Below are positions 1,037 to 18,724 of a DNA stretch of 64,000 nucleotides, piece after piece. The notes under the pieces were generated by a model. It saw only the letters and a list, made by a program, of their open reading frames with translations. It was not told the origin of the DNA and searched no databases. The translations under genes were made by a program, and so were the position numbers. The stretch lies in sequence record MT708547.1; one strand, written 5' to 3'. Each line of letters opens with the position of its first letter. The first letter of the stretch is position 1.

Positions 1037-1051
1037 TTTACAAATCTTTAC
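1037..1051. promoter_or_regulatory. TTTAC-N5-TTTAC box (CpxR/RstA-like)
   Basis: TTTACAAATCTTTAC = revcomp GTAAA-N5-GTAAA. Confidence 0.6.
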
Positions 1052-1077
1052 AAAAAGATTCTAAATGTGAATACAAA

Positions 1078-1092
1078 TGATAATGATTCTCA
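1078..1092. promoter_or_regulatory. Fur-box-like site
   Basis: TGATAAT-G-ATTCTCA. Confidence 0.75.
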
Positions 1093-1099
1093 TTTACAG

Positions 1100-1149
1100 T
1101 ACTGAATACTTTTTCCCACGCCCTGGCGTCTCCGGTTCCTCCCGTCTAT
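1100..1149 (-). ncRNA. Short-RNA family copy B
   Basis: - strand TTGACT-16-TATAAT (1183-1156); CGG-GAGGAA-CCG stem, divergent core CGCCAGGGCGTGGG. Confidence 0.5.
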
Positions 1150-1251
1150 ATAAACATTATACAGTACTGAATAATTAAGTCAATACTATTTTTGCAAAAA
1201 GATTAAAATAAAATACTTGCAATCCTGGTTAGTACTATATTATAATGTTTA

Positions 1252-1300
1252 CAGTACTGAGAAAGTGCTTTTGCCCGCTAGGGTGCTGGGGAGTATGCGT
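1252..1300 (+). ncRNA. Short-RNA family copy C
   Basis: TTGCAA-18-TATAAT (1217-1246); GCCC-GCTA-GGGTGC-N6-GTAT. Confidence 0.55.
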
Positions 1301-1304
1301 TAAA

Positions 1305-1319
1305 TGATAATGAGAATCA
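1305..1319. promoter_or_regulatory. Fur-box-like site between convergent copies C and D
   Basis: TGATAAT-G-AGAATCA. Confidence 0.65.
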
Positions 1320-1334
1320 TTTACAGTACTGGAC

Positions 1335-1370
1335 GGATTTTCCCACCCTCGGGGGTCTCTTTTTGTCTAT
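1335..1370 (-). ncRNA. Short-RNA family copy D
   Basis: - strand TTGATA-16-TATAAT (1404-1377); CCCC-GA-GGGTGG core. Confidence 0.5.
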
Positions 1371-1409
1371 GTAGTAATTATACAGTACTGAGATACTATA
1401 TCAAGTCTC

Positions 1410-1424
1410 TTTACAAATCTTTAC
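1410..1424. promoter_or_regulatory. TTTAC-N5-TTTAC box
   Basis: exact TTTACAAATCTTTAC. Confidence 0.6.
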
Positions 1425-1522
1425 AAAGCACCCGGGGAGATTTTTCTTTACAATAAAAGTACTTGCATAATTCTTTCAGTACTGACATAATGACTACATC
1501 AACCAATTAGGAGTATTACCAG

Positions 1523-1735
1523 ATGGCTACCATTACGACCCTGTTAAAAAATGCAAAAACTGTATTATTCAGTGATGACGAACATACCAACGTGGATATC
1601 ACTGGAGTTAAAAACCTGTTGGATATCAAAAAGATGTTTTCTATTCATGGCAAACTTACGCGTGTTGGCACGTTCGGAAATAAAGTATGTTACCGCCTTT
1701 CAAGTGATTATAATTTCACACTAACTTTACTGTAA
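1523..1735 (+). CDS. Hypothetical protein, paralog of C-terminal half of 4362-4721
   Basis: SD + promoter; LKNAKTVLFxDDE shared. Confidence 0.85.
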   Translation: MATITTLLKNAKTVLFSDDEHTNVDITGVKNLLDIKKMFSIHGKLTRVGTFGNKVCYRLSSDYNFTLTLL

Positions 1736-1798
1736 AAGTACTTGCATAATTCTTTCAGTACTACTATTATATATTCATACCAAAACAGGAGAACTACT

Positions 1799-1969
1799 AT
1801 GAAATATGCATACTCTTATTTTATTGTAAACGGTGAACGTTTGACCATCGGCCAGGCCGCTGTAAAACATGAAATCATTTGCGATGATCTGGCGAAGATG
1901 CTACCAGGTGAAACGCAAGAGTTTTACAAAGGCTTTCAGAAAGTCGTTGTAACACGTTGCGAAGATTGA
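1799..1969 (+). CDS. Hypothetical protein (56 aa)
   Basis: AGGAG SD before ATG 1799. Confidence 0.75.
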   Translation: MKYAYSYFIVNGERLTIGQAAVKHEIICDDLAKMLPGETQEFYKGFQKVVVTRCED

Positions 1970-2034
1970 TCCAGTACTTGGGGCGGAAACGCCCCTAAAA
2001 CGTCCTGTAACGCATTGTAAGAGGTTTTTATAAT

Positions 2035-2262
2035 ATGGCTATAGAAGTTAACGCTGGGGATATAAAGTCGGCTGTACTGCGTACCCTGAAAGCATACGGC
2101 AGAAAGCTGAATGATCGCAACGTTCCCTATTATTTCCTTGCTGCTACTCATAAAATGGCAATCGCTGAGGCTCGCGGGTGGTTGAATGATCGCAGTACTG
2201 TAAAGAGTACCAGAACAAGAAACGCAATTGAGCGATGGATAAAAGAATTAGAACATTTTTAA
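2035..2262 (+). CDS. Hypothetical protein
   Basis: ORF with GAGG SD, followed by terminator. Confidence 0.7.
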   Translation: MAIEVNAGDIKSAVLRTLKAYGRKLNDRNVPYYFLAATHKMAIAEARGWLNDRSTVKSTRTRNAIERWIKELEHF

Positions 2263-2282
2263 TAATTCAGTACTGAAATTAT

Positions 2283-2306
2283 AAGGGGAGTTAATTAATT
2301 CCCCTT
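2283..2306 (+). terminator. Hairpin terminator
   Basis: AAGGGGAG-TTAATTAA-TTCCCCTT. Confidence 0.55.
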
Positions 2307-2319
2307 TACAAATCTTTAC
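2305..2319. promoter_or_regulatory. TTTAC-N5-TTTAC box 10 nt upstream of -35
   Basis: exact match. Confidence 0.6.
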
Positions 2320-2363
2320 AAAAGAATGGTTGACATAGTATTCCAGTACTGGTATTATGTATT

Positions 2364-2415
2364 CATAGACAGAACAAGTCTTTGGCCCACCGGGTGCGGA
2401 GGAGTATATATTAGA
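2364..2415 (+). ncRNA. Short-RNA family copy E
   Basis: TTGACA-17-TATTAT (2330-2358); GAC-AGAACAA-GTC; GCCC-ACC-GGGTGC-N6-GTAT. Confidence 0.65.
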
Positions 2416-2420
2416 TTGAA

Positions 2421-2441
2421 TGAGAATGATAATGATTCTCA
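2421..2441. promoter_or_regulatory. Extended Fur-box-like site between convergent copies E and F
   Basis: TGAGAATGATAATGATTCTCA. Confidence 0.75.
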
Positions 2442-2451
2442 TTTACTGTAC

Positions 2452-2499
2452 TGAATATATTTCCGCACCCTTTTGGGCTTTTCGATTACTTTCTACTTG
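2452..2499 (-). ncRNA. Short-RNA family copy F
   Basis: - strand TTGCAT-16-TATACT (2533-2506); GCCC-AAAA-GGGTGC. Confidence 0.55.
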
Positions 2500-2538
2500 T
2501 TAATAAGTATACCATAATCAGTACTGAATGCAATGGTC

Positions 2539-2553
2539 TTTACAAATCTTTAC
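2539..2553. promoter_or_regulatory. TTTAC-N5-TTTAC box
   Basis: exact match. Confidence 0.6.
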
Positions 2554-2650
2554 AAAAGAAAATAATTATAAAAAGTACTGAAAAAGTACTTGACGCAATA
2601 ATGTAGTACTGGCATAATACATCCATACCAAACAGAACGGAGTAACTAAA

Positions 2651-2938
2651 ATGTTTAATGAAAATGATCATATTGTTAAAGAGTTTTCTTTCAGTAAGCC
2701 GATCCATTTAGAAAACGGTGAAACGCTGGACAATAAATTTTATGGTAGTATTATTAAGCGTTATACATCGCGGAGTAGTACTGGAATTTTGTGGGAAGTG
2801 AATAAACAGTACAATGGTAATTCGCTGGTTGTCAATGAGTGGGAAAGTTATGCAGTAGCTGAAATGGATTTTTCAAACTTCATTACTGAATCTTTGAACG
2901 ATGATATTTTTTACAAGTTCACGGCGGAAAGGGTTTAA
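2651..2938 (+). CDS. Hypothetical protein
   Basis: cassette promoter + GGAG SD. Confidence 0.85.
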   Translation: MFNENDHIVKEFSFSKPIHLENGETLDNKFYGSIIKRYTSRSSTGILWEVNKQYNGNSLVVNEWESYAVAEMDFSNFITESLNDDIFYKFTAERV

Positions 2939-3054
2939 AAAGTTTTAAAGAGTACTTGACAACATAAACCAGTACTGTATAATGTATTGCATAGAAAGGA
3001 GATTCCAGAATAATGGAATCTCCGATAAAATAAACTAATCAGGAGTTAATTACC

Positions 3055-3666
3055 ATGAACGTTATCGATACCATCTATTCTAAATCTTTCGATGAACTGA
3101 ATGCAGAGCAGAAAGAAAAAGCAATTGATATTATGCGGGATCTGGAACGTCACGATTCAGATCCATTCTGGGCACAATTAATTAATGAAGATAAACGCGA
3201 ATTAATGAATAATGAATATGGTTTTACTGATACTGTAATTCATTATAGCGGCTTTTGCTCACAAGGTGACGGGGCGTCAATTAGTACTGAATCAATCGAC
3301 GCAGAGACGTTTTTACGCAAAATTAAAGCATGGTCGAAATTCCGTGTATTGCATAAACATTTCAATGATGGTACAATTACATTAAAGATCGAACGCAACG
3401 ATCATCGTTATTCTCATGAAAATACTGTTTCTGGTGTGGTGGATCTGGACTACGGCACTGAATTCACTGCTAAAAAGGAAGAGAAAGCGGAAGAACTTGA
3501 AACGCTTTTGACTGAAACTATTCGTGATCTTTCACGCCAGCATTATCAGGTTCTGAGCGATGAAAACGATTATCAAAATAGTGATGAAGCATTGATTGAA
3601 TTGATTAATGCAAATGATTATAATTTCAAAGTGGATAGTACTGGTAACGTATTGGGGTTAGCGTAA
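3055..3666 (+). CDS. Acidic conserved phage protein (YSGFxSQGDGAS ... SDEAxxExIxANxYxF family)
   Basis: motifs recalled from a widespread phage/plasmid family often loosely annotated 'antitoxin'; function unproven. Confidence 0.6.
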   Translation: MNVIDTIYSKSFDELNAEQKEKAIDIMRDLERHDSDPFWAQLINEDKRELMNNEYGFTDTVIHYSGFCSQGDGASISTESIDAETFLRKIKAWSKFRVLHKHFNDGTITLKIERNDHRYSHENTVSGVVDLDYGTEFTAKKEEKAEELETLLTETIRDLSRQHYQVLSDENDYQNSDEALIELINANDYNFKVDSTGNVLGLA

Positions 3667-3960
3667 TGACTAAATTATATATTCGTTTCTGTTTTGCCTG
3701 GTACTTGTATAATCTACAAAATGGTTATACAGTGAAATAATATATATTTTTACTGATATACTGTAAAACGTCCTGTAAACGATTATGGGACGTTTTAAGG
3801 AATATTGGTACAATGTTAGTACTGAATGATTTAAAACGGCTTACAGTGGCTTACAGAGCGTTTAAAAAGTACTTGACGCAATAATGTAGTACTGGCATAA
3901 TTCATCTATACCAAATAGCAAAGGGAATCAGTACTGATTCCAATATAAGGAGTAACCAAA

Positions 3961-4275
3961 ATGAGTACTAAAGAACTGAATGTAACTACCAACACTTATA
4001 AGACGTTATGCGGGCGGTTGTTACGTGATTATTACACGGTCGAAATCGAAGAACGCGAATTACCCGAAGATAAACACTATTGGGAAAGTGGTGTGAGTCC
4101 TCTGTTACGGGTAACAACGTCTAAGCATGTTTTCTTTACTTCCCGTATTCATGTTAATAAGCGTGTTGAATTGACTTTCTCTTTCAGTGGTAGTTATAAA
4201 GATCATGAGATATTAAATGATCATATCGTTATTAGCAAATTTATTCAAATGTACGGGGCGGATTCTTTGCTTTAA
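3961..4275 (+). CDS. Hypothetical protein
   Basis: cassette promoter + SD. Confidence 0.85.
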   Translation: MSTKELNVTTNTYKTLCGRLLRDYYTVEIEERELPEDKHYWESGVSPLLRVTTSKHVFFTSRIHVNKRVELTFSFSGSYKDHEILNDHIVISKFIQMYGADSLL

Positions 4276-4361
4276 GTACTTGACAATGCGATCCAGTACT
4301 GTATAATGTATTACATCAAAGGGGATACATAGGGTATCCCTGATTTAAAGGAGTAGCGACT

Positions 4362-4721
4362 ATGCGAGCTTTTAACGTTTATAAGAATGACAAAAAAATT
4401 GACGTTGTTTATTATTCCGAAGTAATGACGGCAAAAGAAGTAACCGATTTGCTGAATAGCCGCGGTGAATACAACGGCGAAGTAAAAGCATTTCGGTCAT
4501 TGAATAGTGCGAATATTCGCACAGTACTGAAAAATGCTAAAACTGTTTTATTCAATGATGACGAATATTTTAATAAAGATGTTACGGGTATTAAAAACCT
4601 GGAAGATCTGAAAAGCCTTATTGGTATTAAAGGCAACGTATACAAAGTGGGGGAAGTCGGATCTCGCCATGAATATAAATTAGCTGGAAGTGATTATAAA
4701 TTTTCAATCCTGGTAATGTAA
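4362..4721 (+). CDS. Two-domain hypothetical protein
   Basis: N-term AFNVYKNxKxIDxVxY domain + paralog of 1523-1735. Confidence 0.85.
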   Translation: MRAFNVYKNDKKIDVVYYSEVMTAKEVTDLLNSRGEYNGEVKAFRSLNSANIRTVLKNAKTVLFNDDEYFNKDVTGIKNLEDLKSLIGIKGNVYKVGEVGSRHEYKLAGSDYKFSILVM

Positions 4722-4722
4722 T

Positions 4723-4926
4723 ATGAAAGTTTATATTTTGGAAGTGGAAGAATGTAATTCATATTCTTACAGTGGTACACTATCACGTGTGGAGGCGGTA
4801 TTTGCCAGCGAGAAAGAAGCCCACACTGCCGGGATTCAAAAAGTAAAAGAAGGCTATGAAGGTTATAGCGTCGATGCTTATGATATTCAGGGCGATCTTT
4901 CAGTACTGAAAAATATGTTGACATAG
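4723..4926 (+). CDS. Hypothetical protein
   Basis: directly follows upstream stop. Confidence 0.75.
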   Translation: MKVYILEVEECNSYSYSGTLSRVEAVFASEKEAHTAGIQKVKEGYEGYSVDAYDIQGDLSVLKNMLT

Positions 4927-4949
4927 TTTTTTGTTACTGTATAATAATT

Positions 4950-4974
4950 AGGGGATCAATCGATCCCCTTTTTT
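4950..4974. terminator. Hairpin terminator
   Basis: AGGGGATC-AATC-GATCCCCT-TTTTT. Confidence 0.8.
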
Positions 4975-5043
4975 GTTTCAGTACTTAATTAATAATAGAT
5001 ACACTACCGCACCCTATGGGTTAGTGCCTTGTGTCCGGCTTAT
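4950..5043 (-). ncRNA. Short-RNA family copy G
   Basis: - strand TTGACT-17-CATAAT (5078-5050); GCC-GGACACAA-GGC; ACCC-ATA-GGGTGC-N6-GTATCTA. Confidence 0.65.
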
Positions 5044-5089
5044 GTAGTTATTATGCCAGTACTGCGAATATAAGTCAATAGGTAGTTTT

Positions 5090-5104
5090 GTAAAGAAGTG
5101 TAAA
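5090..5104. promoter_or_regulatory. GTAAA-N5-GTAAA box 11 nt upstream of copy G -35
   Basis: GTAAAGAAGTGTAAA. Confidence 0.6.
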
Positions 5105-5307
5105 TGCACAGGAAGCATTGTAAGGCGTTAATCTGTTGCTGGTGGCTGATAGTATAGAGAAGTGTTTTAGATTGATTGTAGGCCGTTGTAGGCGTTTATG
5201 AATAGTAAAGTACTGATATTGTTTAATGATCCCGGTATGTGCAAATTATTTTAATTTTTTTCATATTAGGTATTGACGGATTGTGTCAGTACTGGCATAA
5301 TGTATCA

Positions 5308-5375
5308 CATAGAGCGACGGGCAAGACAAGTAGTCAACCTGTAAGACATACGAAAACCAGGTGACGTTGCACTGA
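5308..5375 (+). ncRNA. Candidate ~70-nt three-way-junction RNA
   Basis: TTGACG-17-CATAAT (5273-5301); GCGACG/CGTTGC enclosing GAC/GTC and ACCTG/CAGGT. Confidence 0.5.
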
Positions 5376-5442
5376 TTCAGTACTGAATAATACATAACAT
5401 CTAAATGTTGACAGTACTGAAAAAATGTAGTATAATGATTCA

Positions 5443-5585
5443 CAGAAAGAAGCAATCCAGTAAGCATGGATTAGTGATAAACGTAGACCGGAATCACGAA
5501 AAACTTTCAAGGAAATACCCTTATATAATAAGGGAAGCGTTAAGCGTAGAACGTAAACGCGAAAGTCCTAGCCTTGAACTGAAAA
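5443..5585 (+). ncRNA. Candidate ~140-nt multibranch RNA
   Basis: TTGACA-17-TATAAT (5408-5436); AATCCA/TGGATT, GTGAT/ATCAC, TTCAAGG/CCTTGAA enclosing CCCTTA/TAAGGG and GCGTT/AACGC. Confidence 0.6.
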
Positions 5586-5708
5586 AGTAAACAAGGTAAT
5601 TTAAGAAAAAAGATTTAAAAAAGTAGTTGACAAGTACTAACGAGAATGAGATAATCTCTCTCGTTGAAACAAACAAACAATCTTAATCAAAACTTAAAGG
5701 TGAATAAA

Positions 5709-6209
5709 ATGGCTAAACTGAATTCTGTTGTTGTTGCTCTGATCGCTGGTGATGTTGCTGCTCTGAATGCTTCTTTCGCGTCGGTATCGATGGAAGATAT
5801 GAAAACTGTTCGCAATAACTTTAACGAGTTTTACTCGAAGTTTAAAGCGGCAAATGAAGCGGCGGAAGCGGCTGCAAAAGAGCGTAAAGCACAGATCGAA
5901 ACCGAAACGAAAGCCCTGGTAGATGCCCTGGTAACTGCTGGCCTGGATCTGGAAATGGCCGCCGAAGTCGCCAGCCAGAAAATGGCGGTTAAATATCCCG
6001 AACTGGCCGCGAAGCCGGAAACTGGTAAATCCTGGTCGTTTGAAACGGTATTCGTTAACCTCGACGGCGAAAAACTGGAAATTGGCACTAAAGGCAACAA
6101 AGGCAGCATGAAAGCACTTAAAGCGGCACGCGACGCAATTGCTGCCGGCGAGTACAAAGATCGTGCTGAATGGATCGCCGCACACGCCTGGACTGAAACC
6201 GAAGCGTAA
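5709..6209 (+). CDS. H-NS/MvaT-like nucleoid-associated protein
   Basis: Ala/Glu coiled coil ending ALVTAGLDLE (H-NS MLIADGIDPNE-like); C-term GEKLEIGTKGNK (MvaT GEVIETKGGN-like); high-expression codons. Confidence 0.5.
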   Translation: MAKLNSVVVALIAGDVAALNASFASVSMEDMKTVRNNFNEFYSKFKAANEAAEAAAKERKAQIETETKALVDALVTAGLDLEMAAEVASQKMAVKYPELAAKPETGKSWSFETVFVNLDGEKLEIGTKGNKGSMKALKAARDAIAAGEYKDRAEWIAAHAWTETEA

Positions 6210-6230
6210 TAATTCAGTCCAGTAATAATT

Positions 6231-6254
6231 AGCCTCCTAATTGGAGGCTTTTTA
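6231..6254 (+). terminator. Rho-independent terminator
   Basis: AGCCTCC-TAATT-GGAGGCT-TTTT. Confidence 0.85.
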
Positions 6255-6344
6255 TTTTTGTTCAAAAAAATATTTTAATTTATTTTTTGAACGGATTTCA
6301 AAAATCAGGTATAATAATAAAGGGTGTTAATTACAAAGACCCCC

Positions 6345-6400
6345 ATAGTGTTCGCTACGCTCACATAATGATCTTACTCGTTGCACTCGTAAGATCATTA
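6345..6400. repeat. Hairpins with TTCGCTACGCT / TCGTTGCACTC loops
   Basis: perfect 12-bp stem TAATGATCTTAC/GTAAGATCATTA 6366-6400. Confidence 0.75.
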
Positions 6401-6826
6401 TCCAATCGGCCTTTGGCGATTTCTTTTTGATTTCCTACGGAAACCAAACGAAACCACCAGCAAAGGCATATCCCTTTATTTGATTTAGTTAGTACTGCGA
6501 TTAATTAGTAATTCATTGCACTACATAGCAATCAATTCCTTTTGTAATAACTCACAGGACGCAATAAGACGCGTTTAAATGACTTCCCTATGTAATGCCA
6601 TTCCTTTTTAATAAGTCCTCTCAAAACGCGTTATAGTGCGTTATACGGCGTTTTTATAATACTCATCATTTCTTTTTCAAAAAGTACTTGCATTAATGAT
6701 CCAGTACTGTAATAATGTACTCACTGAAACGCAGTAAGTGAAGTAAGTAAATGCAAATAAGTACTTGACAAAGTGTTATAGTACTGGCATAATGAATACA
6801 CCAAAACGATTAAGGAGAAACACCAA

Positions 6827-7300
6827 ATGTTAAAACTTCATAAAGTACTCGATAACGCTGTTGTAACCGACTTTTTCCTGTCTCTTAACAACGAACCGAA
6901 AACAGCAAAAGAAATTGTTTTGAGTGGTTACGTTGCCAGCAAGTCAGAGATCGCACATTTGGAAAGTGCTTTCAAGTCCGGTGATGCATTATACAAAAAA
7001 ATGCAAAATACCATAGAAGATTTGCAATATATCAATTTACGTGATATTGTAGACAATAAATTGGATATTTCAGAAGAAGCACGCGAGAAGCTGGTAAGTA
7101 AATTATGTTACCGCTGCCGAACTGCAAAATGGAATCGCATTCGTAGTATTATTACTTACGATTTAAGTAATATCGATTCCAAATCAATTCTTGAACGTAT
7201 GTTATTAAATTTGCAAAGCAATGAATGGTTTTATACCGCTGCTCAATCTCATAGCGAAGAAATTGCATATATTCGTGATTATGTAATTTACAGCAAGTAA
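6827..7300 (+). CDS. Hypothetical protein
   Basis: cassette promoter + SD. Confidence 0.85.
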   Translation: MLKLHKVLDNAVVTDFFLSLNNEPKTAKEIVLSGYVASKSEIAHLESAFKSGDALYKKMQNTIEDLQYINLRDIVDNKLDISEEAREKLVSKLCYRCRTAKWNRIRSIITYDLSNIDSKSILERMLLNLQSNEWFYTAAQSHSEEIAYIRDYVIYSK

Positions 7301-7373
7301 TTAATAATTGATTAGCCATCATTAAAGCTGGTGGCTAACAGAATATTAATAACCTGTTGGGAGAATAATCTTT

Positions 7374-7643
7374 ATGAAAGGTATTAGTACTTTAATTGAT
7401 GCAAATACCCGCGTAGCTCGTTCAATGGTTGCTACGTCATTACGTGAATATACTGCAAGCGGGTATTTAGTATTCGCCGTAAATGGCAAATTGCAAGAAC
7501 GTAGAATAGCATTCAGTACTAAAGAGAATTGCCGTTATATTGTATTCAAGAAAGAAGCATACAAGATAGATTTACCAGCTAAACCGATCTCAGGCGGTTA
7601 CAATGTTGAAAGCCTTTATGAAAGGCCACCGTATACTGCGTAG
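7374..7643 (+). CDS. Hypothetical protein
   Basis: GGAG SD. Confidence 0.8.
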   Translation: MKGISTLIDANTRVARSMVATSLREYTASGYLVFAVNGKLQERRIAFSTKENCRYIVFKKEAYKIDLPAKPISGGYNVESLYERPPYTA

Positions 7644-7752
7644 AATCGATTTTGAGCGACTTTAATAAAAATATAGGGAATCATACTGATACCCGTTTAA
7701 AACAGTGTAGAAAGGCGTATAACGCGTTATACGCCGTAAGGGAGTGGATTCT

Positions 7753-7923
7753 GTGAAGCGTGAACAAGCTTTATTAACGCCAGAAGAGGCCCGCCGCTAT
7801 GAAATGTTTTCAAACCAGGAAACGATCAAAGCGGCACAATATAACCCGGTTGCTTGTACAGTACAAAGAAAAAATTTTGTACTGAATGAAGTAGAAAGTA
7901 TTATCAAATCAAATAAGGAGTAA
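7753..7923 (+). CDS. Hypothetical protein (56 aa, GTG start; not in ORF track)
   Basis: AAGGGAG SD, open to TAA 7921. Confidence 0.55.
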   Translation: MKREQALLTPEEARRYEMFSNQETIKAAQYNPVACTVQRKNFVLNEVESIIKSNKE

Positions 7924-7928
7924 ACACT

Positions 7929-8201: not shown

Positions 8202-8255
8202 CAACATAATCCAGTACTGGCATAATAACTACATAGACCACAAAGGAGAAACATA

Positions 8256-8518: not shown

Positions 8519-8881
8519 ATGACTATGTTTGATAAAGTTTTATTTTCTGATAACACCTCTGAAACCGAGATCCCGGAAGCGGTAAAAGCTTTTGCTCAAT
8601 TAGTTGCCCAGCGTCAAACTGATAATTACGACGGGCCTTATTCTTTCCTTACTGAGATTAGTAAAGGCAAAAAGTTTATTAAACTTATTCGCCGCGAGAA
8701 GTGGAAAGATAACGGACAATTAACAGGCGGATCGGTATTTGCCTTTATTGATCCCGATGGTAACATTTACAAATCAGCGACAGCTAAAGCACCAGCTAAA
8801 GGCATTCGCGGAAATGTTAACATCAACGGCGGCGGCGATGCAATCGGGCGTGATGGTTATATTCGTTACTTTCGTAATTGA
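8519..8881 (+). CDS. Conserved phage hypothetical protein (GKKFIK..SVFAFID..GNIYKxAxxKAPAKG.RGN family)
   Basis: motif common in T4-like phages; function unknown. Confidence 0.8.
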   Translation: MTMFDKVLFSDNTSETEIPEAVKAFAQLVAQRQTDNYDGPYSFLTEISKGKKFIKLIRREKWKDNGQLTGGSVFAFIDPDGNIYKSATAKAPAKGIRGNVNINGGGDAIGRDGYIRYFRN

Positions 8882-8932
8882 CAAATCTTTACAAATCCAG
8901 GGGTTGACTTCGGTCGCCCCTTTTGTTATTAT
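8878..8932 (+). promoter_or_regulatory. TTGAC-N5-TTTAC box + terminator/promoter hybrid
   Basis: GGGGTTGAC-TTCG-GTCGCCCC-TTTT containing TTGACT-17-TATTAT. Confidence 0.8.
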
Positions 8933-8937
8933 ATATT

Positions 8938-8995
8938 CATACCACAGAGCAAGTGGTTTAGCCCACAGGGTGCCGAGATGTATCTATAGTTTAAT
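8938..8995 (+). ncRNA. Short-RNA family copy H
   Basis: ACCAC-AGAGCAA-GTGGT; GCCC-ACA-GGGTGC-N6-GTATCTATAGTTT. Confidence 0.7.
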
Positions 8996-10314: not shown

Positions 10315-10324
10315 TCTAATTCCA

Positions 10325-10339
10325 TTTACAAATCTTTAC
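10325..10339. promoter_or_regulatory. TTTAC-N5-TTTAC box 11 nt upstream of -35
   Basis: exact match. Confidence 0.6.
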
Positions 10340-10384
10340 AAAACCAGTACTTGATTTAATTATTGAGTACTGGTATTATATATT

Positions 10385-10437
10385 CATTGGCAGATAAGCC
10401 GCAGCCCACAGGGTGCCGAGATGTATCTATAGTTTAT
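10385..10437 (+). ncRNA. Short-RNA family copy I
   Basis: TTGATT-17-TATTAT (10351-10379); GGC-AGATAA-GCC; GCCCACAGGGTGCCGAGATGTATCTATAGTTT. Confidence 0.7.
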
Positions 10438-11918: not shown

Positions 11919-11920
11919 AG

Positions 11921-11951
11921 AAAAAGGGGAGACAATGAGTCTCCCTTTTTT
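11921..11951. terminator. Bidirectional terminator
   Basis: A-tract-GGGAGAC-loop-GTCTCCC-T-tract. Confidence 0.85.
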
Positions 11952-12020
11952 GTATTCAGTACTATATATATTTTAGATACAATTTGGCACCCTGTGGGTT
12001 AGTAGCTTGTTCTGCTTTAT
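11925..12020 (-). ncRNA. Short-RNA family copy J
   Basis: - strand TTGACA-17-TATAAT (12055-12027); AGC-AGAACAA-GCT; ACCC-ACA-GGGTGC-N6-GTATCTA; ends at bidirectional terminator. Confidence 0.75.
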
Positions 12021-12146
12021 GTAGTAATTATATGATAAAGCTGGTGGCTTGTCAACACTTATTTTAAAATAAAAAGTACTGAATAGTACTTGCAAAAAGT
12101 ATTCAGTACTGTATAATGTTTATATTGAGATTAAGGAGTACTGACT

Positions 12147-12686
12147 ATGTTAATCAAAATGTATCACGGTTCTAATAATTTTGATCATCGCCGTGGATAT
12201 CTGGGCGGAAAACCAGGTAATTTTCATATGGGTTTTGGACTATATCTAACTAACTCTTATCGCTGGGCTGATAATTATGGGCGACGTCATTATGAGTTAG
12301 ATTTAGATCTTTGTAGTACTGGTGCCGCACATAATGTATGGATTCCTACTAAACACTTTATGGAATTCATAAGAGTATATTGTACTAAAAAGTTTTTTAC
12401 AATGTGCTGTAAAGAATTTAAAGACCGTGAATCTTTGAATGTAGAACGCGTTGAATTGCTTATTATCAATATGGAAAGGCATGTTACTAAAATCGCTAAA
12501 CCATTTGCTGAATTCGTCGCCGCCTGGGGTTGTACGCATAGCATTGAAATATCCGGTAACTATGGTGGTGTTTGCTTGCGGCTTTATGATTTCAGTACTA
12601 TAAAGAATTGTATCATAAGCCAGGAAACGCAAGATTTTTATTATCCAGATGAATTGACAAGATATCCTCAAAAAAACTTGTATTAA
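12147..12686 (+). CDS. Putative ADP-ribosyltransferase-fold protein
   Basis: MYHGS..F..G.GLYLTN...A..YG pattern of H-Y class ARTs. Confidence 0.5.
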   Translation: MLIKMYHGSNNFDHRRGYLGGKPGNFHMGFGLYLTNSYRWADNYGRRHYELDLDLCSTGAAHNVWIPTKHFMEFIRVYCTKKFFTMCCKEFKDRESLNVERVELLIINMERHVTKIAKPFAEFVAAWGCTHSIEISGNYGGVCLRLYDFSTIKNCIISQETQDFYYPDELTRYPQKNLY

Positions 12687-12737
12687 TGATTCAGTACTGA
12701 TATAATGTATTAAATTAATCAGGAGGAATTATCTTAA

Positions 12738-12866
12738 ATGAATAACCGTCAATTGATGATCGATGCATCTCGTTTTCGTTCAAAAGAAGAAAAGAGAAGT
12801 TGCATTAAATGGGTTTTGTCAACTTTCATTATTGGATTACTTATTGTTGCTTTTGTTTATAGTTAG
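12738..12866 (+). CDS. Small membrane protein (42 aa; not in ORF track)
   Basis: AGGAGG SD; C-terminal hydrophobic helix. Confidence 0.65.
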   Translation: MNNRQLMIDASRFRSKEEKRSCIKWVLSTFIIGLLIVAFVYS

Positions 12867-13246
12867 TACTTGACAACTGATTTCAGTACTGTATAATGTT
12901 TATCAAAGGGAATGAATAATTCATTCCCAAATAATCAAAGGAGTTTTGCCATGATCTATATTATCAAAGTATCCCCGACTGTAGGCAAATCAGAAGTTGT
13001 AGCCGTCATCACTTCCCTGGAAGCGAAAGATCTTCATACGCCGTTTAATGTATGGGTGGAGGATAATTTCGGCCAATTCAGTACTGCTGAATATATCGAA
13101 CAATTCGCCGTACCGGATACTGGTAAAATCAAAGTGGATCGTATCCTGGATTTTGATAACAGTAATTATTTTTAAAAGTACTTGACAACTGATTTCAGTA
13201 CTGTATAATGTTTATCAAAGGGAATGAATAATTCATTCCCAAATAA
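12865..13246 (+). repeat. 70-bp perfect direct repeats (12865-12934, 13177-13246) flanking one gene
   Basis: identical promoter+hairpin cassette. Confidence 0.9.
12951..13175 (+). CDS. Hypothetical protein
   Basis: AAGGAG SD. Confidence 0.85.
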   Translation: MIYIIKVSPTVGKSEVVAVITSLEAKDLHTPFNVWVEDNFGQFSTAEYIEQFAVPDTGKIKVDRILDFDNSNYF

Positions 13247-13262
13247 ACAAAGGAGTTTTATC

Positions 13263-13409
13263 ATGAAAGAATATATCTTTGAGGTAACTTTCACCTTCGG
13301 CCCGCATCAACTGATCCGCTCTTCTGGTTATAACCGCGAACAAGCATTCAGCAACCTTCGCCGTATGTACCCCAGTGTCGTGACCTGGGTCAAATGTGAA
13401 GAAGCATAA
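13263..13409 (+). CDS. Hypothetical protein (48 aa)
   Basis: AAGGAG SD. Confidence 0.75.
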   Translation: MKEYIFEVTFTFGPHQLIRSSGYNREQAFSNLRRMYPSVVTWVKCEEA

Positions 13410-13489
13410 AATAATTAGTCAGTACTATTGACAACGCGTGATAGTACTGCTATAATTATTTTAACTTATACGGAATGGAGTTAAAACAA

Positions 13490-13726
13490 ATGTTCAGTGT
13501 CAGCAAACAAGGCGACAAATTTCTGGTTCAATACCATCATTTTGATCTGGTATACACTCAGCCAGATTGTGTATTCAGTACTCAGGAAGGTGCCGAAAAG
13601 CACAAAAAAGCCTTGATCGAAAATAGCAACAGTGGTACATTAGATTTCATCCAACAGTACTGGAATGAATCTAAGCTGCTGGATGGATATTCCAATACAG
13701 TTTATTATGTAGGCATGACTGATTAA
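13490..13726 (+). CDS. Hypothetical protein
   Basis: GGAG SD. Confidence 0.8.
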   Translation: MFSVSKQGDKFLVQYHHFDLVYTQPDCVFSTQEGAEKHKKALIENSNSGTLDFIQQYWNESKLLDGYSNTVYYVGMTD

Positions 13727-13828
13727 TCGGGAGTACTGCTAATGTATATACCAATTATCATACCGTTAGCAGTACTGTTAATCGCCGCCGTCATCTGCGA
13801 ACATTATCATTTGTTAGGAATGTAAACT

Positions 13829-13999
13829 ATGATTCAATGTGAATTGTCAGTACTGATCACGCTGTTCTATATGTTGGGACAAAAGAAACAATATATTTCT
13901 GGTGATAATGCATTATTGTATCAATCATTAGACCAATGGCAACGCACTGAATTAAGCAATGCATGGGCGAAAGGTTACAACGATAGTACTGCAAAATAA
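13829..13999 (+). CDS. Hypothetical protein (56 aa; not in ORF track)
   Basis: AGGA SD. Confidence 0.5.
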   Translation: MIQCELSVLITLFYMLGQKKQYISGDNALLYQSLDQWQRTELSNAWAKGYNDSTAK

Positions 14000-14008
14000 T
14001 TTAAAAAA

Positions 14009-14041
14009 GGGGTTGACACAGGTCAGCCCTTTTGTTATTAT
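14009..14041 (+). promoter_or_regulatory. Terminator/promoter hybrid
   Basis: GGGGTTGAC-ACAG-GTCAGCCC-TTTT containing TTGACA-17-TATTAT. Confidence 0.8.
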
Positions 14042-14046
14042 TAGTA

Positions 14047-14100
14047 CATAGCAAGAACAATGCTCAAGCCCACAGGGTGCCGAAGTGTATCTATAGTTTA
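14047..14100 (+). ncRNA. Short-RNA family copy K
   Basis: AGCA-AGAACAA-TGCT; GCCC-ACA-GGGTGC-N6-GTATCTATAG. Confidence 0.7.
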
Positions 14101-14218
14101 TGTAGTACTGAATCATTAATTTTTCTTGACAATTGGTTTAGTACTGGATATAATAGCCGCCATTGAATACAGAACGGGAAATTAGTACTAATTTCCCTTA
14201 CAGGAGGATTTTAAAAAA

Positions 14219-14485
14219 ATGGCCTATCATACACCACATAGACATTTCATTGATAAACGCGGTATGGCTTTTAAAGCAATGAGTGACAATCGTAACACAC
14301 AAATGTACTTTAAAGATATGACGTTAGAAGAAGCTATTGAAGCTGTAAGGAATGATCGTAAGCTTTCCAAGAAAGTTGCATCAGTACTTAATGCTTTTTG
14401 GTTTGAACGTACTACCAACAAAGAATACAAAGAAAAGATGATTGCACTTGGTAAAGTAGTACGAGAAGAAAAATTATATCTTTAA
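14219..14485 (+). CDS. Hypothetical basic protein
   Basis: AGGAGG SD. Confidence 0.85.
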   Translation: MAYHTPHRHFIDKRGMAFKAMSDNRNTQMYFKDMTLEEAIEAVRNDRKLSKKVASVLNAFWFERTTNKEYKEKMIALGKVVREEKLYL

Positions 14486-14580
14486 GTACTTGACTATGTG
14501 ATTCAGTACTGTATACTGTACTTATACCAAACAAAAGTAAAGGGAATCAGTACTGATTCCCTGTAAAGGAGATAGACCAA

Positions 14581-14688
14581 ATGAAACAAGCAAAATTTAA
14601 TTCAGAAATAAAAGCAGCAAAAGCACACAAAGTACAGTTAGTAGTACTGGTTATTGTATCAATCTTTTTGCTGTGCAACATCGGCTAA
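14581..14688 (+). CDS. Small membrane peptide (35 aa; not in ORF track)
   Basis: full cassette + AAGGAG; hydrophobic C-terminus. Confidence 0.6.
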   Translation: MKQAKFNSEIKAAKAHKVQLVVLVIVSIFLLCNIG

Positions 14689-14768
14689 AATAATTATTAC
14701 AGTACTATTGACAACACGTGATAGTACTGGTATAATTACTTTACCAAATCAAAAAGGAGTAACCAAAA

Positions 14769-15044
14769 ATGCGGATTAAACTTACTAATGATGAGATTCA
14801 TTCAGTACTTACTACCAATATGCAGGACTGGAAAAAGTACGCTGATATCGAAGAAGTCCAGGAACTCAATGATGATTTGAGTGTAGATGAAATTATCACT
14901 ATTTGCTCATCTCAATTCTTTGATGATATCAATGATGAAGAGCAAGATGTATTTGATATCATGGAAAAACATTTTATTGCGTATGATGTTTTCCCGTATA
15001 CTCGCCAGGCTTATATTCTTATTCACAACATTTATAACAAATAA
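14769..15044 (+). CDS. Small acidic protein
   Basis: 20 D/E vs 7 K/R in 91 aa. Confidence 0.85.
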   Translation: MRIKLTNDEIHSVLTTNMQDWKKYADIEEVQELNDDLSVDEIITICSSQFFDDINDEEQDVFDIMEKHFIAYDVFPYTRQAYILIHNIYNK

Positions 15045-15056
15045 GGAATAATAATC

Positions 15057-15422
15057 ATGGAAAAAGAATTTAAAATCAAATACAATATCAGTACTGATTG
15101 TGGTTTTGAAGTACCAGAAGAAGATCAAGAACGTCTTAATGATGTTATTATGATTGACATTTCAAATAAAATCATTCAAGGCTACCGCGAAGGTGAATTG
15201 TGTGAATCGTTGATGGATCAATTCGATGAAGTGGAAACATTTTATCGTGGCTGGTGGAGCATCGAAGAAGTTCACAAAGTACACGAATACCGTGTATTCT
15301 GGATTAACGGCGTTAATGATATCGAAGATATCATTGTAAAAGAAAGTAGTGAATCCGCCGCCATTCAGTACTTTAAAGATCACTACCCCAACAAACGTTA
15401 TCACCATTTAGAAAAAATTTAA
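15057..15422 (+). CDS. Acidic hypothetical protein
   Basis: AAGGA SD. Confidence 0.85.
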   Translation: MEKEFKIKYNISTDCGFEVPEEDQERLNDVIMIDISNKIIQGYREGELCESLMDQFDEVETFYRGWWSIEEVHKVHEYRVFWINGVNDIEDIIVKESSESAAIQYFKDHYPNKRYHHLEKI

Positions 15423-15485
15423 AAAGTACTTGACACCTAATATCAGTACTGACATAATTACTTTAAACAAACAAGGTATTACAAA

Positions 15486-15872
15486 ATGAAAAAGATTATT
15501 CTGGCTGTTACTCTGATGGTTTCCGCTTCCTCTGTGATGGCTGTTAATCTCAATGAATTAACTGATTTCAGTAATACTATGCGTGATCGTTTCAGTGTAC
15601 CAGATCACATTGCAAAAGCCGAACAAGCTCGCAACGCTGGCATGAAATGCAATGCATTGATGACCGATGAGAAAACGGGTAAACAGTTTAAATCACAATT
15701 CAGTACTGGCCCGGAGGATAAACCGATGGTATCAGGTAACGATCTGACTTATCATGAAGAAGATGATACCGGTAGTACTACACTGGTTATCAATAAAAAT
15801 ACTGGTAAAGGTTTTATTACTATTATGGACGCAAGCCAGGTAATTGCAACTGGTAACGTAATTTGCAAATAA
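15486..15872 (+). CDS. Exported (signal peptide) protein
   Basis: MKKIILAVTLMVSASSVMA; two Cys. Confidence 0.8.
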   Translation: MKKIILAVTLMVSASSVMAVNLNELTDFSNTMRDRFSVPDHIAKAEQARNAGMKCNALMTDEKTGKQFKSQFSTGPEDKPMVSGNDLTYHEEDDTGSTTLVINKNTGKGFITIMDASQVIATGNVICK

Positions 15873-15957
15873 AATACTTGACAACATAATCCAGTACTGA
15901 TATATTAATACGCATAGGGGCAAACAACTTGCCCCACTAAACAAAAGGAACTACCAA

Positions 15958-16314
15958 ATGATTACTAAATTCTACGCTACTCGTGAACTGGCTCGGAACG
16001 TCGCTCGTGAAGAAGGTGAAACCTTCAAAGATATGGGTAAAGATTCCCCTGCTGGTCAACGCTGGGCAGTACTGTTCCGCGAGGTCAAAGACCTGGTAGA
16101 AAACGCTAAAGCCGTTGAAATGAACGTTCCCACCAAAGAAGATAAAGAACTGACTGATGCCCTCGCCGCTGCATTCTCCGCGATGGATAAAGCCGCAGCG
16201 GTAGTACTGAAAGTACCGGAATTTGTTACCAGAAAAGTGCATTCAGTACTACAAAATAAATTCAATGGTAAACAGGTTCAAGTGTTTACTAAACGTAAAA
16301 TTCCGGTCATGTAA
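15958..16314 (+). CDS. Hypothetical protein
   Basis: cassette + SD; followed by terminator. Confidence 0.85.
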   Translation: MITKFYATRELARNVAREEGETFKDMGKDSPAGQRWAVLFREVKDLVENAKAVEMNVPTKEDKELTDALAAAFSAMDKAAAVVLKVPEFVTRKVHSVLQNKFNGKQVQVFTKRKIPVM

Positions 16315-16337
16315 AATCTGACTATTACAGTACTAAC

Positions 16338-16360
16338 AAAGGGGCTTCAATGCCCCTTTA
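16338..16360. terminator. Hairpin terminator
   Basis: AAAGGGGC-TTCAAT-GCCCCTTT. Confidence 0.75.
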
Positions 16361-16422
16361 AACGTCCTGTAAGCCATTCTAAGAGGTTTTACATGAAAAA
16401 GGTACAATTACACAAAGGAGTA

Positions 16423-16641
16423 ATGAAAGTTCATTATAATGCCCCGCAACGCATTATAGATAGATCCATTGAACTAGCCAATCAATACCTAGCTGGTGGA
16501 TTAACTCCCAGGAAGTTAAGCAACGGGAAGTTATATGTAATCAACGTTGATACTAATAATCGTATAGTAATCAAAGGTGAAAGCATATCACTGTATGAAC
16601 ATCAACAGTATAACAAGAAAGTAAAAAATATTAGTAGATAA
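16423..16641 (+). CDS. Possible ParE/RelE-like small toxin-fold protein
   Basis: ..Y..G...PRKL....Y.INV...RIV......L.EH..YN pattern; AAAGGAG SD. Confidence 0.35.
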   Translation: MKVHYNAPQRIIDRSIELANQYLAGGLTPRKLSNGKLYVINVDTNNRIVIKGESISLYEHQQYNKKVKNISR

Positions 16642-16720
16642 GTATTGACAACTGATTTCAGTACTGCCATAATGTATACATACAAGGCAATACCGCCTAA
16701 TAACATAGGAGTAACTGAAA

Positions 16721-17143
16721 ATGAAAAAATCAACTAAAATTGTCTTAGGTGTATTTGTTGTTCCGGCAGTCGCCTTTTTTACTTGTGCTATGATTTTTGG
16801 TGATGCTTCTCGGGTTGCCGCAAAAATCGAAAAAGAAAAACAAGTCCAGGCACAAGTCAAGAAAGAAGAAAAACCAAATTATAACACTGTATGGGAAGCA
16901 ATTTGCCATACCAGTACAGGTAAACGAATTTCCATCCTTACAGCAATGAATAATGGAAAATCAATCGTCGGAAACGAATACATGGAAGTGACTTCCAGTA
17001 CTGGTAAAGAATTCGTAATGACGAACTATAATAACAATAATGTTGCAATTGTTACACAGGATTTTAAAGGTAATGCAGTACTTGAATATCATACGGAATA
17101 TGAAGTAATATTTGCAAAATGCACGTTTGAATGGGGTGCATAA
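16721..17143 (+). CDS. N-terminally membrane-anchored protein
   Basis: hydrophobic IVLGVFVVPAVAFFTCAMIF. Confidence 0.8.
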   Translation: MKKSTKIVLGVFVVPAVAFFTCAMIFGDASRVAAKIEKEKQVQAQVKKEEKPNYNTVWEAICHTSTGKRISILTAMNNGKSIVGNEYMEVTSSTGKEFVMTNYNNNNVAIVTQDFKGNAVLEYHTEYEVIFAKCTFEWGA

Positions 17144-17163
17144 AAATAAAAAAAAATCAAAAA

Positions 17164-17198
17164 GGGGGGTTGACATATGTCAGCCCCTTTGCTATTAT
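17164..17198 (+). promoter_or_regulatory. Terminator/promoter hybrid
   Basis: GGGGTTGAC-ATAT-GTCAGCCCC-TTT containing TTGACA-17-TATTAT. Confidence 0.8.
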
Positions 17199-17203
17199 TA
17201 ATA

Positions 17204-17252
17204 TCAAGAAAACAAGCTAACCCACAGGGTGCATAAATGTATCTATAGTTTA
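17204..17252 (+). ncRNA. Short-RNA family copy L
   Basis: ACCC-ACA-GGGTGC-N6-GTATCTATAGTTT; stem 1 degenerate. Confidence 0.6.
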
Positions 17253-17324
17253 TTAAAGAATTTTAGTACTTGACAACGTAGTACAGTAGTACTAAAATAT
17301 CTACATACAAAGGAGATTACCAAA

Positions 17325-17909
17325 ATGAACAAACATCTTAAAGTACTGAATAAATGTAAATCCAATACCGAAATGTTACTGTACTGTTACAAAAATTTAA
17401 TTAAACTCGGGAGAGGTTCATCCAGGACAGTATTTTTGTTAACAAAAAATAAAGTACTGAAAGTTGCTCATAACCATATTGGCAACCAACAGAATACAGC
17501 AGAAATCACTGCATGGTTGTATATTGATTATGACCGCTATTATAATAAACGTTTTTTCGCTAAAGTGTTCCCTGATATGTCGCATTTCAAAGATGTATAC
17601 ATAGTACAGGAGTACTGCGACAATATCAGTACTAAAGAAGCGAAGCCATATATTGAACATTACAAAGATTCACGTACAATTAAAAATGAAAGGGCTAAAC
17701 GCTTCCACACGGCGTTAAGAGATGTAGATAATACCCTTAACTATAAAACGCTGGTGGACTTAAACATGGGCAATATAGGCCGTTCTGTAAGGGGTGCAAT
17801 CAAAATCCGTGATTATGGTTTGTCTGAACATATTGCTAAACAGTACCGAGAAGCCCGCTTCCAATACCAGAAGCTCAAAAGTATTAGTAAAATAAGTATT
17901 GATTTATAA
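17325..17909 (+). CDS. Minimal Ser/Thr protein kinase-like protein
   Basis: LGRGSSRTVF (Gly loop), VLKVA (Lys), AE (alphaC), YIVQEY (hinge), DLNMGNIG (catalytic D..N), IRDYG (DFG-like). Confidence 0.75.
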   Translation: MNKHLKVLNKCKSNTEMLLYCYKNLIKLGRGSSRTVFLLTKNKVLKVAHNHIGNQQNTAEITAWLYIDYDRYYNKRFFAKVFPDMSHFKDVYIVQEYCDNISTKEAKPYIEHYKDSRTIKNERAKRFHTALRDVDNTLNYKTLVDLNMGNIGRSVRGAIKIRDYGLSEHIAKQYREARFQYQKLKSISKISIDL

Positions 17910-17975
17910 TTTCAGTACTGGTATAGTACTTTCACAGGGGAGATAATCTCCCCAAATCACAAAGGAGATTTTACC

Positions 17976-18338
17976 ATGAGTACTAAACCATTTGTAACCA
18001 CTCGTTCCAATCTGACTGAGATCTATGTACATGGTGGATATGAGGAAACGTATGTCACTGGTATTATGGTAGAATTCCATCAGGGTTATCGGTTTATGTT
18101 GGTAGATTCAGAAATCTATCATACCCAACAAGATAAACATGGTTATGTCAATAAGTACTCCACCGATGAAGTACTGAAACGCCTGGATAATAAAATTAAA
18201 CAAATTCAAAAACATCTTGACAACGGCGGAAAACTTAATCATTTACTTTGGGATAGCTTAGATCCCTGCTACGGTTCGGATGCATATGGTAAAAGCCGTG
18301 ACACTGCAATGAAAGTACTTAAAGATTATTTCTTTTAA
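17976..18338 (+). CDS. Hypothetical protein
   Basis: cassette + SD. Confidence 0.85.
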   Translation: MSTKPFVTTRSNLTEIYVHGGYEETYVTGIMVEFHQGYRFMLVDSEIYHTQQDKHGYVNKYSTDEVLKRLDNKIKQIQKHLDNGGKLNHLLWDSLDPCYGSDAYGKSRDTAMKVLKDYFF

Positions 18339-18429
18339 GTATTGACATAGGTTATCAGTACTGTATAATGTTTTGCATACACAAGAGATTCCAGTGCTGG
18401 AATCTCTAATCTAAAGGAGAATACCGAAA

Positions 18430-18711
18430 ATGATTACTGGTCACATTACTAACTATGCAAAACGCCGCGATGTAGAAATCGAAGTACTGAAAGCTGGCGA
18501 AGTTGACGATGACGCCCAGGTATGGTTCTACACCGCAGACAATGATTGTGAACCAGTACTGATGTACCTGATTAATAATGATGGTTCTCTTACTTATCGT
18601 AGCAAACTGATGAAGTCACTGGAAGATATGCCAGCACATATCAATAATAAAGAAGTACTGAAACGCGTAATCTGCTACATCTCAGACCAGCACAAAGCGG
18701 ATATGATGTAA
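18430..18711 (+). CDS. Hypothetical protein
   Basis: cassette + SD. Confidence 0.85.
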   Translation: MITGHITNYAKRRDVEIEVLKAGEVDDDAQVWFYTADNDCEPVLMYLINNDGSLTYRSKLMKSLEDMPAHINNKEVLKRVICYISDQHKADMM

Positions 18712-18724
18712 TCTTTACAAATAT

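Follow-up and report, generated by a model that had tools for sequence, protein, structure and literature searches.

A tandem TTTAC-N5-TTTAC box of regulator type upstream of a subset of predicted early promoters in Klebsiella phage Muenster

Organization of the left terminal repeat

The 64,000-nt stretch of DNA analyzed here, hereafter the window, corresponds with 100% identity to the left 64 kb (bases 1-64000) of Klebsiella phage Muenster (MT708547.1), a virulent RaK2-like jumbo myovirus of the genus Alcyoneusvirus with a genome of 346,937 bp. We focused on a tandem box, TTTAC-N5-TTTAC, found upstream of predicted promoters of short non-coding RNAs in the direct terminal repeat of this phage. 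The terminal repeat spans positions 1-20030 (PhageTerm prediction in the record), i.e., 5.8% of the genome, and its G+C content of about 35% falls to about 27% past the right boundary. It is densely filled with small genes of unassigned function, located behind strong sigma-70-type promoters of the form AGTAC-TTGACA ... CAGTACTG-TATAAT, and the majority of Muenster genes are hypothetical proteins in the annotation of the record, which is based on HHpred and InterPro. The first 2.6 kb hold few genes and many other repeats and palindromes. All the promoters in this analysis were predicted from sequence. Genome-wide counts were made on the whole Muenster record joined to the window, a record that contains a single copy of the terminal repeat (20,030 bp).

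Within the terminal repeat, we observed 13 copies of a module composed of a predicted sigma-70 promoter, a core CCC-N3-5-GGGTGC and a conserved GTATCTAT-like stretch, hereafter the short RNAs. The cores lie on the minus strand at 18-29, 935-951 (unit A), 1343-1355 (unit D, CCCCCGAGGGTGG), 2465-2477 (unit F), 5009-5020 (unit G) and 11987-11998, and on the plus strand at 1274, 2386-2397 (unit E), 8962-8973 (unit H), 10405-10416 (unit I), 14069, 17221 and 18785-18797 (unit M). In 12 of the 13 modules the core starts 21-40 nt after the -10, and this distance is 21-29 nt in the units that carry a box except unit A, whose more degenerate core is found about 60 nt after the -10. The module family recurs in other RaK2-like phages, namely Asteriusvirus, Munch-like phages and Mimasvirus, with 6-12 copies per phage in the regions compared. 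Among 46 modules from five phages, 32 have a leader hairpin with a 3-6-bp stem and a purine-rich loop of 6-7 nt, the stem sequences being diverse. The mean folding energy of the module leaders is -2.8 kcal/mol versus -1.0 kcal/mol for shuffled sequences, and the 5' hairpins covary. No Rfam family matched the short RNAs at the gathering and E-value thresholds. It is probable that the modules are genuine units of transcription.

On its left side, the genome ends physically 17 nt past the minus-strand core copy located in window positions 1-30, and in circularly permuted records of relatives the sequence continues uninterrupted across the point that forms the Muenster left end. Promoter-plus-stem-loop cassettes also recur between the early genes of T4-type phages. 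Like them, the Muenster modules are short, have a strong sigma-70 promoter, are present in many copies in the early region and may have spread by recombination; they differ by the extra operator-like repeat found upstream of a subset of them, and by a core that is not a simple stem-loop.

A 20-bp tandem box enriched in the terminal repeat

The exact motif TTTAC-N5-TTTAC occurs six times in the window versus 0.51 expected, and none of 100 shuffled sequences reached six copies. Five exact boxes are on the plus strand, at 1037, 1410, 2305, 2539 and 10325, all with the sequence TTTACAAATCTTTAC, and one is on the minus strand, at 5090 (TTTACACTTCTTTAC). In addition, a box with one mismatch was observed at 8878 (TTGACAAATCTTTAC) and a half site with its pentamer at 18714-18718. 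These positions had been proposed by an earlier sequence-only reading of the stretch, and all of them are correct, including the mismatched box and the half site. The whole genome of 346,937 bp has seven occurrences of the motif: six in the terminal repeat, with four of these perfect copies within the first 2.6 kb, and one at 186812, where the copy is unrelated and has an unrelated spacer. The same reading would have fallen with an equal motif frequency elsewhere in the genome; the frequency is unequal, six of the seven copies being concentrated in 5.8% of the genome. Only the 5-nt spacing is enriched, as spacings N3, N4, N6, N7 and N15 gave 0-1 matches each in the terminal repeat. When one mismatch was allowed, we counted 0.45 boxes per kb in the terminal repeat versus 0.17 per kb elsewhere.

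What is conserved is a tandem repeat of 20 bp, 2 x (C)TTTACAAAN, whose half-sites agree at 9 of 10 positions. Tandem Repeats Finder detected two perfect 2.0-copy repeats of the 10-mer TCTTTACAAA (100% matches), at 1408-1427 and 2537-2556. An identical 19-mer, CTTTACAAATCTTTACAAA, is common to five of the six perfect copies, and these five are paralogues and not independent events. Pairwise identity among the six perfect copies reaches 92% over the 20-nt element, versus 33% over the 24 nt to its left and 28% over the 21 nt to its right; the box is an island of conservation and not the margin of a longer repeat. The element is rich in A+T (16 of 20 positions, 80%), with T3 and A3-4 tracts phased every 10 bp, and its T3-N2-A3 pattern is its own reverse complement.

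Position of the boxes relative to the predicted promoters

A full or partial box was found in 8 of the 13 modules, the units without a box being those with cores at 29 (minus strand), 1274 (plus), 11998 (minus), 14069 (plus) and 17221 (plus). All eight copies are located at about -62 to -40 of predicted sigma-70 promoters and, as previously claimed, in two geometries. In the direct orientation, the gap to the -35 is 10 nt for unit E (2305) and 11 nt for units G (5090, minus strand), H (8878), I (10325) and M (18704, the upstream position), and in the inverted orientation it is 6 nt for unit A (1037) and 5 nt for units D (1410) and F (2539).

Among the direct copies, box E (2304-2323, plus strand) precedes promoter E (2330-2358, plus strand; -35 TTGACA at 2330-2335, 17-nt spacer, -10 TATTAT at 2353-2358). 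Box G (5086-5105, minus strand; TTTACACTTCTTTACAAAA) keeps both pentamers intact while two bases of its spacer differ; it precedes promoter G (5050-5078, minus strand; -35 TTGACT at 5078-5073, 17-nt spacer, -10 CATAAT at 5055-5050), from which the predicted transcript would stop at an annotated bidirectional terminator (4951-4978). The mismatch of box H (8877-8896, plus strand) is a TTGAC in the upstream half, which overlaps the stop codon of gene 017. Promoter H (8904-8932, plus strand) has its -35 TTGACT in the loop of a terminator-like hairpin (8900-8924) and its -10 TATTAT at 8927-8932. Box I (10324-10343, plus strand) is located directly past the stop codon of gene 022 and is followed by promoter I (10351-10379, plus strand; -35 TTGATT, 17-nt spacer, -10 TATTAT). 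At unit M only the promoter-proximal repeat unit is present (18713-18722, plus strand; CTTTACAAAT), because the upstream position falls inside the 3' end of gene 045; promoter M (18730-18758, plus strand) again has a -35 TTGACT in a hairpin loop, with a -10 TATTAT. The degeneracy of the upstream half in both H and M may therefore be due to its overlap with the 3' end of the preceding gene.

The three inverted copies carry TTTAC on the plus strand and face minus-strand promoters. Box A (1036-1055; CTTTACAAATCTTTACAAAA) is next to promoter A (1002-1030; -35 TTGTTT at 1030-1025, 17-nt spacer, TGn-extended -10 TATGAT at 1007-1002), which reads towards the degenerate core of its unit. Box D (1409-1428) and box F (2538-2557), each taken with the preceding T, form the two perfect 10-bp repeats described above. 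They adjoin promoter D (1377-1404; -35 TTGATA at 1404-1399, 16-nt spacer, -10 TATAAT at 1382-1377) and promoter F (2506-2533; -35 TTGCAT at 2533-2528, 16-nt spacer, -10 TATACT at 2511-2506), respectively. Promoters E and F are convergent across an imperfect palindrome. In addition, box D is located 38 nt upstream of the -35 of the plus-strand mRNA promoter of gene 002, and box F, at the same distance, upstream of that of gene 005.

The sequence-only reading had found boxes only beside short-RNA promoters, and all eight copies are indeed at core-bearing units, even if D and F are also near the two mRNA promoters. A box was associated with 7 of 13 core-bearing promoters versus 0 of roughly 33 other promoter-like sites in the terminal repeat (Fisher p=3e-5, a value inflated by paralogy). 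The -35 is non-consensus in 7 of the 8 boxed promoters (TTGACT three times, TTGATT, TTGATA, TTGCAT and TTGTTT once each); of the 4 unboxed units whose promoter was called with confidence, 3 have a TTGACA -35. The TTTACA hexamers of the box were considered as an alternative -35 and rejected on reading the sequence, no -10 being present at a suitable distance.

Two further observations concern the architecture of these units. At 8900-8924, 14009-14033, 17164-17190 and 18725-18750, a G+C-rich hairpin with a T run behind it has a -35 TTGAC(T/A) in its loop, so that a single sequence resembles the terminator of the upstream gene together with the promoter of the next unit. The convergent promoter pairs (1213-1404 and 2330-2533) would transcribe both strands of an imperfect palindrome of about 200 bp, and the two short RNAs of each pair would be largely complementary.

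Conservation of the box in related phages

All six boxes are kept in phage K64-1 and in the K. pneumoniae phage OU509535, a result of little weight given that the genomes are 93-96% identical. In KP13-7, the region matching the first two boxed units of Muenster has a convergent module pair without boxes. The E. coli Asteriusvirus phages TH47 and PBECO4 possess one TTTACAAATCTTTACAA each, which precedes a TTGACT -35 by 11 nt and belongs to the orthologue of the unit G module. This box is identical over 17 nt to the Muenster box; the Asteriusvirus orthologue of G has the canonical spacer, and the Muenster G box differs from it in the spacer only. A BLAST search with unit G gave about 76% identity in 33 Escherichia phage records, the alignment beginning at the first base of the box, and by our own arithmetic the chance of 17 unchanged positions at 24% divergence is roughly 1%. 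Where an Asteriusvirus record begins with the terminal repeat, its boxed unit is located about 2.4-3.5 kb from the left end. On these comparisons, the box is under constraint where present, yet it is a lineage-specific accessory of the module.

An exact 15-mer scan of IMG/VR gave at least 118 matches, mostly single and unrelated, and was uninformative beyond RaK2-like phages; several matches together were found only in the RaK2 contig (five, in three stretches) and in one 19-kb fragment. The exact 19-mer had 71 matches in unrelated phyla (Haemophilus haemolyticus, Gastranaerophilales, cyanobacteria and others) among 185,579 bacterial species genomes. In a contig of Haemophilus haemolyticus M19501 it occurs twice in tandem, at 2353-2391.

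Candidate proteins recognizing the box

The CpxR consensus is GTAAA-N(4-8)-GTAAA, i.e., TTTAC-N4-8-TTTAC, typically with N5 (PMC3158067; PMC13353760; PMC5063474), and CpxR has been reported to act whatever the orientation of the site (PMC5063474). In the phage, the six perfect copies have two direct pentamers with a spacer of 5 nt throughout, and the boxes lie 5-11 nt upstream of a predicted -35 in both orientations. The boxes therefore share with those of the Cpx regulon of Enterobacteriaceae the direct GTAAA/TTTAC pentamers, the 5-nt spacer, the 10-bp period and the location upstream of sigma-70 promoters in either orientation. In contrast to them, the phage boxes precede non-coding promoter-core modules in a virulent jumbo phage; their repeated unit (CTTTACAAA) is longer than the pentamer, and five or more copies are identical to the letter.

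RstA, an OmpR/PhoB-family regulator studied in K. pneumoniae itself, recognizes a box, TACATNTNGTTACA, with the classic core TACA-N6-TACA (PMC4117788). The tandem core is present as TACAAATCTTTACA within every perfect phage box, whereas a direct comparison with the published extended consensus gave agreement at only 10 of its 12 specified positions. Moreover, classic boxes are missing from the K. pneumoniae homologues of E. coli RstA targets (PMC4117788), which makes the specificity of RstA in this host uncertain. The consensus sequences given for both regulators in the sequence-only reading agree with the literature, and the boxes match both the CpxR consensus and the RstA core.

OmpR itself was rejected as the binder, since the box scores 7.5 bits on a 24-site matrix (PMC3050692), below all the known sites (10.6-21.9 bits, median 15.2), and about 0.4% of the 20-mers of the genome score as high as the box. 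The likeness to the OmpR sites F1-F3 and C1-C3 of the porin promoters is one of architecture: 20 bp made of two 10-bp sub-elements with a TTTAC-like start, abutting the -35 region. In operators of the OmpR/PhoB family, each helical turn carries a conserved block and, after it, an A/T tract. The phage box has this generic form, with two direct units of 10-bp period, each a conserved block plus an A/T-rich tract.

Among the proteins that can be named, host phosphorylated CpxR would be the best candidate reader of the box, a reading to which we give a probability of about 0.4, and RstA would be the second candidate. The operator would be bound by a head-to-tail protein dimer on two 10-bp units, (C)TTTAC + AAA + N, which is the architecture of the sites of OmpR/PhoB-family winged-helix response regulators. 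Located at about -62 to -40, the bound regulator would contact the alpha-subunit C-terminal domain of RNA polymerase or sigma region 4. The boxes accompany only a subset of the promoter-core modules, mostly with an imperfect -35, and in this model the level of the envelope-stress signal in the infected cell would tune the output of early non-coding transcripts. The box suggests that the phage may read a host stress signal. Base-specific recognition by a protein at the promoter is indicated by C positions that do not vary, by a tandem structure with a strict 10-bp period and by sequence identity across genera at a fixed spacing; we infer that the promoters fire and that a protein binds there, and likewise the identity of this protein and the sign of its effect. 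The box would be a regulator-type tandem operator, an element of a known kind, in an unusual place.

Several observations weigh against CpxR as the reader or call for caution. Conservation exceeds the CpxR pentamers, as the preceding C, the following AAA and the spacer are also kept, even across genera; this extra conservation is consistent with gene conversion or with a factor that recognizes a longer sequence. Relative to the -35, the pentamers of the direct and inverted copies are 6 bp apart, which places them on different helical faces. The element, with its 80% A+T, lies exactly in the window of the upstream promoter element (UP element). No box was present in the regions compared of Munch (Salmonella), fENko-Kae01 (K. 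aerogenes) and GAP32 (Cronobacter), which contain 6-12 modules per phage, and the hosts of these phages also have CpxR. In the Asteriusvirus UE-S1 (about positions 120-150 of the sequence compared), the upstream half-site and the spacer are changed while the flanks and the promoter are kept. The exact 19-mer is absent from Enterobacteriaceae among the 185,579 bacterial species genomes, so that the box is no copy of a host site and has no host template there. Finally, in the literature on transcription in RaK2-like phages, we found in-silico promoter predictions for phage CBB only, and no binding or expression data.

The sequence-only reading had proposed that the short RNAs could be switched on by the envelope stress of adsorption or injection, or else that the boxes are regulator decoys or sites for a phage winged-helix protein. 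The part of this proposal that finds support is a tandem OmpR-family-type site at promoters, in view of the island-like conservation, the fixed spacing across genera and the position at -62 to -40; on the regulator itself, the conservation beyond the pentamers, the box-less relatives and the UP-element window counsel caution.

It is a common view that the early promoters of virulent phages act as constitutive traps of the host RNA polymerase. If the box were the site of a two-component response regulator and did control some of the first non-coding transcription in RaK2-like jumbo phages, the outcome of infection would depend on the envelope-stress state of the host at DNA entry, which would be relevant to Klebsiella phages considered for therapy, and a handle would be gained on the function of the 13-copy promoter-core RNA modules. 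If a phage protein reads it, the box would be half of a new regulator-operator pair in a genome annotated mostly as hypothetical. Under either reading, the box is a precise and testable feature.

Alternative explanations of the box

A phage-encoded protein, or a host protein other than CpxR and RstA, may instead recognize the full 9-10-bp unit CTTTACAAA twice and, at a later stage of infection, turn this set of early promoters off or on, a possibility that we consider rather unlikely. It would account for the agreement of the half-sites at 9 of 10 positions, for a 17-20-mer that is invariant, spacer included, in five paralogues and two genera, and for boxes restricted to the lineages Alcyoneusvirus and Asteriusvirus and absent from Munch-like phages and GAP32; that most of the annotated genes are hypothetical also speaks for it. 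However, no response-regulator-like or winged-helix protein is present in the annotation of the Muenster record, a Pfam scan of 10 terminal-repeat proteins revealed no winged-helix regulator, and at the first firing of the sigma-70 promoters only host or virion-borne proteins would be present. Gene 004, a small gene that adjoins box E and is described in the record as sigma-factor-like (sigma-region-4-like), was rejected as the source of the binder: it is restricted to Alcyoneusvirus and hence does not co-occur with the Asteriusvirus box.

The same position could also be explained with no regulator at all. UP elements act at -40 to -60 through minor-groove contacts, and class I activators share this window (PMC2613000). 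The box could be a UP-like, intrinsically bent A/T-tract module that is bound directly by RNA polymerase alpha and boosts a weaker -35, and its filling of the -40 to -60 window, its A+T content, the 10-bp phasing of its T3 and A3-4 tracts and the weaker -35 hexamers of the boxed promoters would all follow. The self-complementary T3-N2-A3 pattern, the shift of only about 2-3 bp that separates the centres of the 18-mer in the two orientations, and the generic A-rich sequence found at the box position in the box-less Munch, fENko-Kae01, GAP32 and KP13-7 also point this way, as do the RpoD-like promoters reported, together with UP-like elements, for the related phage CBB, which belongs to the same phage group and, like the boxed units, would use such A/T-rich sequences at early host-polymerase promoters. 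We nevertheless judge this explanation unlikely. A UP-like element would not keep four C positions, atypical of UP elements, and the exact base order at 100% in paralogues with randomised flanks, nor 17 of 17 positions between genera in which identity drops to only about 76% in the promoter and RNA next to it; the box also differs from UP elements by its strict 10-bp tandem structure and by its presence at only some promoters of one module type.

Two other explanations dispense with transcription or with function. Four of the six perfect copies are in the first 2.6 kb, which is gene-poor and dense in repeats and palindromes, and the Asteriusvirus boxed unit is likewise near the left end; both facts would suit DNA-level sites for terminase and end recognition or for replication. 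Such sites would leave unexpected the fixed 10-11 or 5-6 nt to the -35 at all eight copies, including those at 5, 9, 10 and 19 kb, and nothing similar is present at the right terminal-repeat boundary, so that we consider this explanation highly improbable. The core motif was also considered as a terminase signal at both terminal-repeat boundaries and rejected, as it is absent at 20030. Functionless leftovers, copied along with a duplicating promoter-core cassette, would explain the five identical 19-mers, all of them beside one repeat family, and the dispensability of the boxes in some relatives. Passive passengers would have decayed alongside the flanks, yet the flanks retain about 30% identity versus 92% for the element, which is moreover invariant across genera at a fixed spacing, and this origin is very improbable.

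An extended form of the CpxR reading, in which CpxR-type operators and Fur-box-like palindromes together make the genome end a host envelope-stress and iron sensor gating early structured RNAs, and in which replicated copies could titrate regulators away from host defence and repair regulons, would be quite unlikely. Fur-box-like palindromes were observed at 787-805, 793-811, 819-837, 1079-1097, 1306-1324, 2422-2440 and 2428-2446. At the left end, the convergent short-RNA units are centred on them, and four of the TTTAC-N5-TTTAC boxes are clustered with them; in published work, functional boxes had a match of 68-74%.

Further features of the region

Among the ten terminal-repeat proteins scanned for a regulator, the only notable Pfam match was that of gene 011 (5709-6209, plus strand), to PF22470, the N-terminal oligomerisation domain of H-NS (E=1.3e-5, passing the curated cut-off); its product is a phage-encoded H-NS-like protein of the earliest region. 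Immediately outside the right boundary of the terminal repeat, at 20072-20139, a 12-bp tandem array of ATTCTGTACACT is present in 5.8 copies. Lastly, the hexamer AGTACT, which flanks the -35 and the -10 alike in the early promoters, occurs 157 times in the terminal repeat versus about 7 expected from base composition, and 949 times genome-wide.

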